Of a DNA stretch of 64,000 nucleotides, positions 37,511 to 41,075 are shown one piece after another; the first letter of the stretch is position 1, and each line of letters begins with the position of its first letter. Position numbers and translations under genes: made by a program. The stretch covers positions 6,386,001-6,450,000 of the forward strand of contig NC_042997.1 in the NCBI RefSeq assembly GCF_006345805.1, written 5' to 3'. The notes under the pieces are model-generated. The model had not been told where the DNA came from, made no database searches, and saw nothing but the letters and a program-made list of their open reading frames with translations. The DNA comes from Octopus sinensis. Its lineage: Eukaryota.

Positions 37511-37766
37511 TATATACATATATATATATATATATATTTAATTAATCAATATAGGGTGGCAAGGAAAATTTTGTAGAATTTTATTGCCACCAGCGGCCCA
37601 GTGGGAAAAAATTAAATAGTCATAGACCATTTTTAAGTTCAACATTAACAATTAAGGAACGACCATAATAGGCCATTCACCCACTAGAAATAACAGCCAA
37701 AGCTTCTACCGCAAATAAAGATTAATTCCGTAAACAGGAGAAAATTAAAAAAACATTTACCCTGTA

Positions 37767-37871
37767 ATTTCTTGTACGGTATACCGTTTCATCCGCTGTT
37801 TAATGGTAAACTAACCTGATTAAATTAAATCAAGCCATCTTCCATAAGCCCTCGATTCTTCAGCAAGAAAT
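37767..37871 (-). ncRNA. Type I hammerhead ribozyme, copy 1
   Basis: The reverse complement has ATTTCTTG-CTGAAGA-ATCG(1-nt deletion)...CGGAT-GAAA-CGGTATACCG-TA/CAAGAAAT. Confidence 0.8.
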
Positions 37872-38251
37872 AGCTATCAAGTCGGAACAGATATTTACAC
37901 GAGGCATACCCAATCTTGCCAAGGCAATATCTGACCTAAAATTTCAAATCGTCGCACTCGCGCCAAATTTATCGGCAGCAAATAAATATCAGCCGTCGAT
38001 TCCATTACGGAATTAACCAAAAATTCATAATTAATCAATATGGGTGGCAAGGAAAATTTTGTAGAATTTTATTGCCACCAGCGGCCCAGTGGGAAAAAAT
38101 TAAATAGTCATAGACCATTTTTAAGTTCAACATTAACAATTAAGGAACGACATAATAGGCCATTCACCCCTAGAAATACAGCCAAAGCTTCTACCGCAAA
38201 TAAAGATTAATTCCGTAAACAGGAGAAAAATAAAAAAACATTTACCCTGTA

Positions 38252-38359
38252 ATTTCTTGTACGGTATACCGTTTCATCCTCCGTTTTAATGGTAAACTAA
38301 CCTGATTAAATTAAATCAAGCCAATCTTCCATAAGCCCGCGGATTCTTCAGCAAGAAAT
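38252..38359 (-). ncRNA. Type I hammerhead ribozyme, copy 2
   Basis: Same core; stem II ATCC/GGAT retained, with variant sequence next to it. Confidence 0.8.
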
Positions 38360-38814
38360 AGCTCAAGTCGGAACAGATATTTACACGAGGCATACCCAAT
38401 CTTGCCAAGGCAATATCTGACCTAAAATTTTACAGGGTAAATGTTTTTTTAATTTTCTCCTGTTTACGGAATTAATCTTTATTTGCGGTAGAAGCTTTGG
38501 CTGTTATTTCTAGTGGGTGAATGGCCTATTATGGTCGTTCCTTTATTGTTAATGTTGAACTTAAAAATGGTCTATGACTATTTAATTTTTTCCCACTGGG
38601 CCGCTGGTGGCAATAAAATTCTACAAAATTTTCCTTGCCACCCTATATTGATTAATTATGAATTTTTTGGTTAATTCCGTAATGGAATCGACGGCTGATA
38701 TTTATTTGCTGCCGATAAATTTGGCGCGAGTGCGACGATTTGAAAATTTTAGGTCAGATATTGCCTTGGCAAGATTGGGTATGCCTCGTGTAAATATCTG
38801 TTCCGACTTGAGCT

Positions 38815-38921
38815 ATTTCTTGCTGAAGAATCCGCGGGCTTATGGAAGATTGGCTTGATTTAATTTAATCAGGTTAGTTTACCATTAAACAGCGGATGAA
38901 ACGGTATACCGTACAAGAAAT
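38815..38921 (+). ncRNA. Type I hammerhead ribozyme, copy 3 (intact)
   Basis: Stem I ATTTCTTG(38815)/CAAGAAAT(38914), CTGAAGA 38823-29, stem II ATCCG/CGGAT, GAAA 38898-901, stem III ACGG-TATA-CCGT, predicted cleavage after GTA at 38913. Confidence 0.92.
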
Positions 38922-39298
38922 TACAGGGTAATGTTTTTTTAATTTTCTCCTGTTTACGGAATTAATCTTTATTTGCGGTAGAAGCTTTGGCTGTTATTTC
39001 TAGTGGGTGAATGGCCTATTATGGTCGTTCCTTAATTGTTAATGTAACTTAAAAATGGTCTATGACTATTTATTTTTCCCACTGGGCCGCTGGTGGCAAT
39101 AAAATTCTACAAAATTTCCTTGCCACCCTATATTGATTAATTATGAATTTTTTGTTAATTCCGTAATGGAATCGACGGCTGATATTTATTTGCTGCCGAT
39201 AAATTTGGCGCGAGTGCGACGATTTGAAAATTTTAGGTCAGATATTGCCTTGGCAAGATTGGGTATGCCTCGTGTAAATATCTGTTCCGACTTGAGCT

Positions 39299-39403
39299 AT
39301 TTCTTGCTGAAGAATCCGAGGGCTTATGGAAGATTGGCTTGATTTAATTTAATCAGGTTAGTTTACCATTAACAGCGGATGAAACGGTATACCGTACAAA
39401 AAT
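39299..39403 (+). ncRNA. Type I hammerhead ribozyme, copy 4
   Basis: Core intact; the stem I 3' strand lacks one G (CAAAAAT); predicted cleavage after 39396. Confidence 0.85.
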
Positions 39404-39782
39404 TACAGGGTAAATGTTTTTTTAATTTTCTCCTGTTTACGGATAATCTTTATTTGCGGTAGAAGCTTTGGCTGTTATTCTAGTGGGTGAATGGCCTATT
39501 ATGGTCGTTCCTTTATTGTTAATGTTGAACTTAAAAATGGTCTATGACTATTTAATTTTTTCCCACTGGGCCGCTGGTGGCAATAAAATTCTACAAAATT
39601 TTCCTTGCCACCCTATATTGATTAATTATGAATTTTTTGTTAATTCCGTAATGGAATCGACGGCTGATATTTATTGCTGCCGATAAATTTGGCGCGAGTG
39701 CGACGATTTGAAAATTTTAGGTCAGATATTGCCTTGGCAAGATTGGGTATGCCTCGTGTAAATATCTGTTCCGACTTGAGCT

Positions 39783-39896
39783 ATTTCTTGCTGAAGAATC
39801 CGCGGGCTTATGGAAGATTGGCTTGATTTAATTAATCAGGTTAGTTTACCATTAAACAGCGGAGAAATGGATGAAACGGTATACCGTACAAGAAAT
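39783..39896 (+). ncRNA. Type I hammerhead ribozyme, copy 5
   Basis: Core intact; short insertion in the stem II region (cggagaaatggat); predicted cleavage after 39888. Confidence 0.85.
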
Positions 39897-40276
39897 TACA
39901 GGGTAAATTTTTTTTTAATTTTCTCCTGTTTACGGAATTAATCTTTATTGCGGCGGTAGAAGCTTTGGCTGTTATTCTAGTGGGTGAATGGCCTATATGG
40001 TCGTTCCTTAATTGTTAATGTTGAACTTAAAAATGGTCTATGACTATTTAATTTTTTCCCACTGCCGATTGGTGGCAATAAAATTCTACAAAATTTTCCT
40101 TGCCACCCTATATTGATTAATTATGAATTTTTTGGTTAATTCCGTAAGGAATCGACGGTGATATTATTTGCTGCCGATAAATTTGGCGCGAGTGCGACGA
40201 TTTGAAAATTTTAGGTCAGATATTGCCTTGGCAAGATTGGGTATGCCTCGTGTAAATATCTGTTCCGACTTGAGCT

Positions 40277-40382
40277 ATTTTTGCTGAAGAATCCGAGGGC
40301 TTATGGAAGATTGGCTTGATTTAATTTAATCAGGTTAGTTTACCATTAAACAGCGGATGAAACGGTATACCGTACAAGAAAT
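40277..40382 (+). ncRNA. Type I hammerhead ribozyme, copy 6
   Basis: Core intact; the stem I 5' strand lacks one C; predicted cleavage after 40374. Confidence 0.85.
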
Positions 40383-40766
40383 TACAGGGTAAATGTTTTT
40401 TTAATTTTCTCCTGTTTACGGAATTAATCTTTATTTGCGGTAGAAGCTTTGGCTGTTATTTCTAGTGGGTGAATGGCCTATTATGGTCGTTCCTTAATTG
40501 TTAATGTTGAACTTAAAAATGGTCTATGACTATTTAATTTTTTCCCACTGGGCCGCTGGTGGCAATAAAATTCTACAAAATTTTCCTTGCCACCCTATAT
40601 TGATTAATTATGAATTTTTTGGTTAATTCCGTAATGGAATCGACGGCTGATATTTATTTGCTGCCGATAAATTTGGCGCGAGTGCGACGATTTGAAAATT
40701 TTAGTTCAGATATTGCCTTGGCAAGATTGGGTATGCCTCGTGTAAATATCTGTTCCGACTTGAGCT

Positions 40767-40873
40767 ATTTCTTGCTGAAGAATCCGAGGGCTTATGGAAG
40801 ATTGGCTTGATTTAATTTAATCAGGTTAGTTTACCATTAAACAGCGGATGAAACGGTATACCGTACAAGAAAT
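40767..40873 (+). ncRNA. Type I hammerhead ribozyme, copy 7 (intact)
   Basis: All stems and core as in copy 3; predicted cleavage after 40865. Confidence 0.92.
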
Positions 40874-40991
40874 TACAGGGTAAATGTTTTTTTAATTTTC
40901 TCCTGTTTACGGAATTAATCTTTATTTGCGGTAGAAGCTTTGGCTGTTATTTCTAGTGGGTGAATGGCCTATTATGGTCGTTCCTTAATTG

Positions 40992-41075
<84 letters not shown>

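Follow-up and report, generated by a model that had tools for sequence, protein, structure and literature searches.

The window analyzed here, a stretch of 64,000 nucleotides of Octopus sinensis DNA (NC_042997.1, positions 6,386,001 to 6,450,000, with coordinates below counted from its first letter), contains a block of about 3.5 kb that holds seven hammerhead-bearing copies of a non-coding repeat unit. We regard this array as a likely case of a single insertion of a non-autonomous, non-coding retrozyme of the kind that lacks long terminal repeats (non-LTR), brought in by twin-primed integration of the Penelope type with reverse transcription primed at the target, and the enzymes that mobilized it were probably those of a Penelope-like element. 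By the features that can be read from DNA the array fits the non-LTR retrozyme class, since its tandem units, of a length within the range of ~50-1000 bp, all contain a type I hammerhead motif and are non-coding and of low GC content (0.36), and since a Penelope-like element resides in the same window. It also bears the marks of retrotransposition, lying in (TA)n between identical copies of a 16-mer and having truncated and inverted relatives in O. sinensis that possess the same termini.

A BLAST search of the window with one unit (40375-40865) confined the family to 37539-40996 and found it nowhere else in the 64 kb, and Tandem Repeats Finder called a period of 484 bp at 38430-40996. The reference unit is non-coding, 491 nt long and 36% GC. 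When the units are aligned from the predicted ribozyme cut site, the block resolves into two arms whose 3' ends point outward and whose 5' ends meet at 38429/38430. These arms and the microsatellites that enclose them are as follows.

37436 to 37537, no strand: left (TA)n target microsatellite, with one copy of the 16-mer ATATTCATATATACAT at 37504-37519.
37539 to 38429, minus strand: inverted arm of 1.8 units, which extends from a 5' end at 38429 (unit position ~324) to a 3' end at 37539 (unit position 236, ...CCCTATATTGATTAATTA), from unit alignment and BLAST.
38429 to 38430, no strand: head-to-head junction of the arms, with a 2-nt TT microhomology, from the sequence and the unit alignment.
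38430 to 40996, plus strand: direct arm of 5.3 tandem units, beginning at unit position 8 and ending at unit position 131, its 3' end ...CCTTAATTGTTAAT abutting (AT)n, from Tandem Repeats Finder, alignment and BLAST.
40995 to 41081, no strand: right (TA)n microsatellite; ATATTCATATATACAT recurs at 41069-41084, which makes the pair a candidate for a long target-site duplication.

An earlier reading of the letters alone, which we refer to as the sequence-only reading, had described seven near-identical tandem units. The seven copies are indeed where that reading placed them, but they do not form a plain tandem, with 1.8 units inverted and 5.3 direct. Because the arms stand head to head rather than as one tandem of seven units, seven sense ribozymes cannot sit on one transcript. 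The plus arm begins at unit position 8, only 7 nt past the predicted ribozyme cut, and this start could reflect a 5' end generated in the RNA by the ribozyme, but its closeness to the cut could also be a coincidence, for which the chance is roughly 3-6%. The segments 37539-38429 and 38430-39320 constitute an inverted repeat of ~890 bp, and a read-through transcript of this repeat would form a long double-stranded hairpin, a possible source of small silencing RNAs. The lack of coding capacity claimed by the sequence-only reading is borne out. The open reading frames (ORFs) of the array do not exceed 72 amino acids (the longest are of 66-72) and are broken or inconsistent between copies, and the longest ORF conserved in the unit, of 66 amino acids, found no homologue among 5.8 billion proteins. 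A tRNA or short interspersed nuclear element (SINE) origin of the unit was considered and rejected, as ARAGORN found no tRNA-like gene in the 30-47 kb interval.

To describe the hammerhead motif we used a descriptor that called for at least 5 pairs in helix I, at least 4 in helix II and at least 3 in helix III, with a helix II domain of up to ~110 nt. The seven copies of the motif are listed here with their predicted cuts.

37767 to 37871, minus strand: core starting at 37863, cut after 37775; a 1-nt deletion in helix II; does not match the descriptor.
38252 to 38359, minus strand: core starting at 38351, cut after 38260; helices I, II and III of 8, 4 and 4 bp.
38815 to 38921, plus strand: core at 38823-38829, cut at 38913/38914; helices of 8, 6 and 4 bp.
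39299 to 39404, plus strand: core starting at 39307, cut at 39396/39397; 3' strand of helix I damaged (CAAAAAT); does not match the descriptor.
39783 to 39896, plus strand: core starting at 39791, cut at 39888/39889; helices of 8, 5 and 4 bp, with an 8-nt insertion before the 3' strand of helix II.
40277 to 40382, plus strand: core starting at 40284, cut at 40374/40375; helices of 6, 5 and 4 bp.
40767 to 40873, plus strand: reference hammerhead, core at 40775-40781, GAA at 40850-40852, A17 (and cut) at 40865.

Inspection of these copies shows that the core CUGAAGA and the cleavage-site segment GAAAC...ACCGUA/CAAGAAAU (the slash marks the predicted cut) are present in all seven, and that the canonical requirements are satisfied in every one: C3 U4 G5 A6 N7 G8 A9, G12 A13 A14, the pair A15.1-U16.1, and H17, which is A. 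C15.2-G16.2 is also present. The conserved core that the sequence-only reading saw in each unit is thus confirmed, as is the spacing of 483-492 nt that it gave for the predicted cuts, which holds on both arms (483, 492, 486 and 491 on the plus arm, 485 on the minus arm). Its claim of three helices per unit stands for five of the seven copies, in which helix I has 6-8 bp, helix II 4-6 bp and helix III 4 bp, but not for the copies with cuts after 39396 and 37775, where helix I and helix II, respectively, are damaged. The helices are arranged as in a type I hammerhead, with helix I open and helices II and III closed. Helix I is formed by AUUUCUUG and CAAGAAAU (8 bp), with C1.1 paired to G2.1. The base of helix II is AUCCG/CGGAU, of 5 bp (6 where the sixth position is C), and it continues into a long imperfect hairpin, so that the helix II domain comprises 68 nt (40782-40849 in the reference copy); 6 of the 18 pairs in this extension are G-U. 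In all copies the pair at 10.1-11.1 is A-U and not the usual G-C. Helix III, ACGG-UAUA-CCGU, is together with its loop a perfect 12-nt palindrome, ACGGUAUACCGU. According to published work, a palindrome in helix III enables the type I hammerheads of metazoans to work as dimers when their transcripts are tandem (PMC4209133), and because of its palindrome the array motif could likewise act either as a single or as a double hammerhead.

Three kinds of evidence bear on whether this motif is meaningful. First, five of the seven array copies matched the descriptor and no other sequence of the window did, and when the whole window was shuffled 200 times with its dinucleotide composition preserved and searched on both strands (25.6 Mb of shuffled sequence), there was no match at all. 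A second descriptor, which required at least 6 pairs in helix II with one mismatch allowed and a helix III loop of at least 2 nt, was applied to 147 kb of real octopus DNA and matched only the array and two hammerheads of Penelope-like elements. A chance origin of the motif is excluded. Second, the minimum free energy (MFE) fold of the 118-nt segment 40763-40880 is the three-way junction of a hammerhead, with an energy of -36.3 kcal/mol (z = -5.0), and 99.6% of the helix cells are paired in the array copies, compared with 23-46% in slid controls. Third, the predicted structure depends on the strand. The linear monomer has an MFE of -145.2 kcal/mol in the plus sense (z -5.7) and of -97.4 in the minus sense (z -3.0), and when folded as a circle the values are -140.6 kcal/mol with 62% of the nucleotides paired (z -4.6) and -93.6 with 50% paired. 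The G-U pairs in the helix II extension imply that this part of the structure would form only in plus-sense RNA. With the core in all seven copies and an MFE fold that reproduces the junction, the type I hammerhead that had been predicted for each non-coding, low-GC unit was recovered.

We turn now to the footprint of the insertion, which the sequence-only reading had not noticed. The exact 16-mer ATATTCATATATACAT occurs in the window only at the two flanks of the array. Further information came from a second O. sinensis locus, which we call L011 (GCA_006345805.1, CM016863.1:63895024-63916331) and which was reached when the GIY-YIG ORF of the Penelope-like element described below was searched against proteins. 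L011 holds two short relatives of the unit (~40-90 nt, ~80% identical), both of them within (TA)n.

L011 3960 to 4046: 5'-truncated relative, corresponding to unit positions 146-234.
L011 6379 to 6468: miniature inverted pair, in which 6379-6432 corresponds to unit positions 129 to 76, inverted, and abuts 6432-6468, which corresponds to unit positions 196-234.

The outward ends of these relatives, ...CCCTAAATTGAYTAAT and ...CCTAAATTGTTA, are the termini of the two arms in the window (unit positions ~234-236 and ~129-131). It appears, then, that three independent insertions have in common their target, their 3' termini and their 5' truncation, and that two of them also have the inverted-pair topology. 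Since only ~4% of the window is (TA)n, by summing the output of Tandem Repeats Finder, the repeated landing in (TA)n is not due to chance. Both recurrent termini lie ~12 nt past a stable hairpin (GAAUGGCC...GGUCGUUC in one case and GGUGGCAAG...CCUUGCCACC in the other) and end in AUUG(A)UUAAU, which may signify either recognition by an enzyme or microhomology with a (TA)n primer. A scan for promoters and terminators of the bacterial type, which is irrelevant for a eukaryote and was discarded, merely pointed to the hairpin before one of these termini. None of the five observed 3' ends coincides with the ribozyme cut, an observation that is consistent with synthesis starting within a circular or multimeric template and not on a linear monomer left by cleavage. 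Proteins of long interspersed nuclear elements (LINEs) led to three more 20-kb loci, in O. sinensis, O. vulgaris and O. bimaculoides, and these contained no relatives of the unit. Ten exact 19-mer matches in JGI metagenomes were dismissed as chance, being bare 19-mers with no further similarity.

Comparison of the copies with one another bears on how far the assembly can be trusted. They differ by 31 indel events and 24 substitutions; the two segments at the edges of the array (37539-37774 and 40375-40996) are mutually identical, with the noise concentrated in the interior copies. This suggests that the interior variation is noise of long-read assembly or polishing, and the excess of indels together with the identical edges means that the "broken" ribozyme copies may not be real. 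Since such a pattern is typical of poorly polished long-read repeats, it might be argued that the inverted arm and some of the repeat copies are themselves artefacts, produced by a chimeric long read or by a collapsed or expanded repeat. However, the junction is asymmetric, joining unit position ~324 to position 8, and this argues against a fold-back assembly artefact, for which a missed adapter would be expected to give a perfect fold-back. Moreover, both outer ends of the array are anchored in unique flanks, and L011 shows the inverted-pair architecture in miniature. We consider an assembly artefact to be extremely improbable.

A Penelope-like element lies 17 kb downstream of the array, between (AT)n at 57360-57418 and (TA)n at 61254-61298, and it contains a hammerhead of its own.

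57419 to 61253, plus strand: Penelope-like element, 5'-truncated and frameshifted, with a reverse transcriptase (RT) frame (PMGS, YRDD) followed by a GIY-YIG ORF at 58456-59838.
61136 to 61223, plus strand: Penelope hammerhead, with helix I UUUCGG/CCGAGA, core CUGACGA at 61142-61148 and A17 at 61217, ~40 nt from the 3' end of the element.

The ORF at 58456-59838 ends in a GIY-YIG module (Pfam E 1.4e-3), and the element has Asn-rich low-complexity expansions. A search with the ORF returned one O. sinensis protein, at 64% identity; this nearest protein is annotated as "myelin gene regulatory factor-like A" and looks like a mis-annotated fragment of a transposon. The element is 71-84% identical in DNA sequence to L011, which has the same Penelope-like element plus an inverted 3' fragment upstream of it, an arrangement that is classic for Penelope. 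In the Penelope hammerhead, helix II (GCACGAG/CUCGUAC, with an insert of ~43 nt) is followed by GAAAC and an 8-nt palindromic helix III, ACGAUCGU. It aligns with two further O. sinensis copies in L011, at 11794-11875 (plus strand) and 7715-7625 (minus strand, in the inverted 3' fragment), and among the three copies 92.9% of the helix cells are paired, compared with 21-50% in slid controls; two of the pairs are compensatory. A change from G-C to A-U at 10.1-11.1 is among these, and this switch suggests that the A-U found at the same position in the array would be tolerated. The Penelope hammerhead was not detected by Rfam, even at E<=10. Array and Penelope hammerheads are thus laid out alike: both have a long insert in helix II, then GAAAC, a helix III that is palindromic, and A17. 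A pair of 89-nt repeats in inverted orientation (56671-56759 and 61548-61636) was considered as the termini of the Penelope-like element and rejected, since both are copies of an unrelated SINE-like repeat. Copies of this repeat are found at 30242-30679 and 46256-46492 as well as at these two positions, with common GTCGAT..ATCGACCCC motifs, and they include a 217-bp tandem pair in addition to the inverted pair, 94% complementary, on either side of the Penelope-like element.

What is known of Penelope-like elements is relevant here. They carry hammerheads in their terminal repeats (PMC4209133), they give rise to partial tandem insertions and to inverted, 5'-truncated copies, and they prefer microsatellites, including (TA)n (PMC8557442). 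Animal retrozymes have been proposed to be passengers or derivatives of these elements (PMC7229834; 10.64898/2026.07.22.740005). The array itself has neither an RT nor a GIY-YIG ORF and is not an autonomous Penelope-like element, and the presence in the window of such an element with its own hammerhead fits the proposed Penelope-type mobilization of the array.

These data can be combined in the following scheme. Multimeric plus-sense transcripts would cut themselves after GUA (for example at 38913/38914) to yield monomers of ~490 nt, which would be circularized by a host RNA ligase. An RT with an associated endonuclease, most likely the GIY-YIG enzyme of a Penelope-like element, would nick a (TA)n microsatellite, and synthesis of cDNA would be primed internally on the circular or multimeric template at unit positions ~131 and ~236, ~12 nt past the hairpins, where the AUUG(A)UUAAU ends are located. 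If both ends of the target served as primers (twin priming), the 3' ends of the two products would face outward and their 5' ends would be joined centrally, and several passes around or along the template would account for the tandem units. Transcription, cleavage, circularization, the identity of the enzymes and the choice between rolling-circle and linear-multimer templating are all steps that we infer. A more specific proposal can be made, namely that the locus and its O. sinensis relatives record the footprint of animal retrozyme integration, with internal initiation at two modules that each consist of a hairpin plus AUUG(A)UUAAU, and with the 68-nt helix II as a variant specific to cephalopods and overlooked by standard models. 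This we offer tentatively and regard as rather doubtful.

A number of observations weigh against the retrozyme interpretation, and they are best considered together with the alternatives that they favor. A scan of the whole window at the Rfam gathering thresholds reported no ribozyme, and a scan of a 3.9-kb slice at E<=10 found neither Hammerhead nor any other ribozyme class on either strand. A comparison with the Rfam hammerhead models had been proposed with the sequence-only reading, and its outcome was mixed. In searches of 161-nt slices, Hammerhead_1 (RF00163) aligned over its full length (positions 1-45 of 45) on the expected strand in all three copies tested, with scores of 21.4 bits for the reference hammerhead, 19.1 for the copy at 38815-38921 and 19.0 for that at 38252-38359 (E 0.004-0.026 for those small searches, the best being 0.0041). 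But these scores are below the gathering score of 34 bits, so that the array hammerhead falls outside the family at its curated threshold, and the model was absent from the larger scans. The motif departs from Hammerhead_1 in a 60-61-nt insertion at the 6-nt loop of the model, in the A-U pair at 10.1-11.1 and in having A rather than C at position 17. The sub-threshold score coincides with these three departures and is probably due to the helix II insertion of ~60 nt and to the A-U pair. In addition, a covariation test found zero variable pairs among the seven near-identical copies and so speaks neither for nor against the helices, and no loop1-loop2 tertiary contact could be assigned from the array hammerhead sequence. 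Given the A-U pair and the lack of an identifiable loop-loop contact, the activity of the hammerhead could be weak. The motif would therefore seem to be real and improbable by chance, but to represent an atypical hammerhead.

It might be supposed from the sub-threshold Rfam scores, from the A-U pair at 10.1-11.1 and from the absence of covariation that the array is an ordinary satellite, or the result of local tandem duplication, in which a hammerhead-like motif is fortuitous or dead. Such an origin is difficult to reconcile with the failure of 25.6 Mb of shuffled sequence to produce one descriptor match, with the folding of the segment exactly into the hammerhead junction, with the plus-strand specificity of a G-U-rich structure, and with the related layout of the hammerhead in the co-resident Penelope-like element. 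The insertion footprint and the 5'-truncated relatives in L011 argue for an RNA-mediated origin. We judge the satellite explanation to be very improbable.

Other points against our interpretation concern the insertion and its enzymes. Three variants of ATATTCATATATACAT with one mismatch exist elsewhere in the window, and the flanking "duplication" is microsatellite-like. The protein, 19-mer and octopus-locus searches did not recover a ribozyme-bearing relative from other loci. The window's own Penelope-like element is defective, being 5'-truncated and frameshifted. Two facts would accord with mobilization of the same element by a LINE, for instance of the jockey/CR1-like type, instead of by a Penelope-like element. 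An intact ORF of 293 amino acids that encodes the C-terminal part of a LINE RT (36502-37383) ends ~50 bp before the left (TA)n, and the inverted and direct arms with their microhomology resemble the products of LINE-1 twin priming, of which such an arrangement is the classic signature. Furthermore, the authors who described retrozymes left LINEs open as possible mobilizers (PMC7229834). However, among the elements in hand the array has its (TA)n target and the architecture with an inverted 3' fragment in common only with the Penelope-like copies of the window and L011, the hammerhead layout is common to these copies and the array, and the bias for (TA)n as well as tandem and inverted insertions have been ascribed to Penelope-like elements (PMC8557442). 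The adjacency of the LINE can be explained if the array landed in a microsatellite next to it. Mobilization by a LINE is in our opinion unlikely.

The last of the points against a retrozyme derived by way of a Penelope-like element is that no primary-sequence similarity was detected between the unit and the Penelope 3' region, the Smith-Waterman scores being within the range of shuffled sequences. Derivation of the unit from that region was accordingly rejected, and short BLAST matches in L011 at 11800-11950 were set aside as chance. The same result bears on a further possibility, that the array is not an independent family but a rearranged stack of (pLTR-like) terminal repeats of a Penelope-like element, the coding part of which is absent at this locus. 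This possibility draws on the presence of hammerheads in the terminal repeats of Penelope-like elements and on the insertion of these elements as partial tandems with inverted 5'-truncated copies (PMC8557442; PMC4209133), and also on the relationship in sequence between Xenopus retrozymes and Penelope terminal repeats (10.64898/2026.07.22.740005). Against it, the 491-bp unit has no detectable similarity to the available Penelope 3' regions, the 5.3 plus 1.8 units contain no remnant of any ORF, and the relatives found in O. sinensis are short, non-coding and not joined to an RT. A stack of terminal repeats is, we believe, quite improbable, and we retain the interpretation of the array as a retrozyme insertion.

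It is of interest to compare the array with systems that have been described. Like the non-LTR retrozymes of coral, mussel, axolotl and other metazoans (PMC7229834; 10.64898/2026.07.22.740005), it is built of non-coding, low-GC units that measure a few hundred bp and contain one type I hammerhead apiece; extensive self-pairing is predicted for its monomer, Penelope-like elements coexist with it, and any flanking duplication exceeds 4 bp. The consensus lengths of published retrozymes range from 51 to 972 bp, and 75% of the families reach at most seven units (10.64898/2026.07.22.740005). The suggestion in the sequence-only reading that ~490 nt is at the large end for the class does not agree with this range; the seven units of the array equal the typical maximum for most published families. 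The array differs from these retrozymes in its helix II domain, which has 68 nt instead of ~4 bp plus a loop, in the A-U pair at 10.1-11.1, and in that no canonical loop1-loop2 contacts were recognized. It differs from them also in its inverted-plus-tandem arms and its cephalopod host.

The hammerheads in Penelope terminal repeats (PMC4209133) resemble those of the array in being of type I, in their enlarged helix II and in a helix III that is small, palindromic and suited to a dimeric, double-hammerhead mode, and they too are linked to tandem or inverted insertions targeted to (TA)n. In contrast to them, the array unit contains no RT or endonuclease ORF and does not resemble the Penelope 3' region in sequence, and two of its helices, I (8 bp) and III (4 bp with a 4-nt loop), are more stable than in the Penelope hammerheads termed "minimal". 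Tandem repeats that, like the array, encode hammerheads of type I are also known from the genomes of newts (satellite 2), Schistosoma (Sm-alpha) and cave crickets (pDo500), and Sm-alpha is SINE-like. In the newt type helix III is also short and palindromic, although the palindromic helix III of the array is more stable than that of the newt motif. These three systems have a compact helix II, defined tertiary contacts, and cleavage and transcripts that have been demonstrated, whereas those of the array are predicted from sequence. Finally, in common with the inversions that LINE-1 produces by twin priming, the arms of the array have their 3' ends outward and their 5' ends joined by microhomology, with a candidate target-site duplication at the flanks. 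The array is unlike these inversions in that its template would be a repeat RNA (circular or multimeric), in that the target is (TA)n and not TTTT/A, in that there is no poly(A), and in that the enzyme was probably of the GIY-YIG/Penelope type.

The host is an octopod, in agreement with the sequence-only reading, which took the array to be from a cephalopod. The proteins nearest to the transposon ORFs of the window, at 64-80% identity, belong to Octopus sinensis, O. vulgaris and O. bimaculoides, and the interspersed repeats match loci of the same three species at 84-95%. The jockey/CR1-like LINE RT fragment mentioned above (plus strand) is 72-80% identical to Octopus proteins. A second RT of the LINE type is located at 52573-54026 on the plus strand (RVT_1 E 1e-21), where it is split by frameshifts over three overlapping frames. 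An ORF at 13589-13996 on the minus strand, in a GC-richer stretch at 10-14 kb, has a weak match to a CCHC zinc knuckle (Pfam E 0.001, below the curated cut-off) and is possibly gag-like and probably part of another retroelement. Near the end of the window, at 63225-63883, there is a long imperfect (GAA)n tract of 215 repeats with a strong purine skew.

The value of these observations is incremental, in that the class, its link to Penelope-like elements and its tandem architecture are already in the literature, and what the array adds is probably an example from a cephalopod. Searches of the full-text literature found no paper on hammerheads or retrozymes of cephalopods, and if our interpretation is confirmed, the array would extend the retrozyme class to this group. 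It would also mean that hammerheads with a large helix II escape annotation based on Rfam, and that the class may be under-counted. Retrozymes are a recently recognized route to abundant small circular RNAs in animals, and the way in which these RNAs are copied back into DNA has so far been deduced indirectly. As a clean and young insertion, the array provides, through its target in (TA)n, the duplication at its flanks, its outward 3' ends and its inverted junction, a testable model for the Penelope-type, twin-primed integration of a repeat RNA template.

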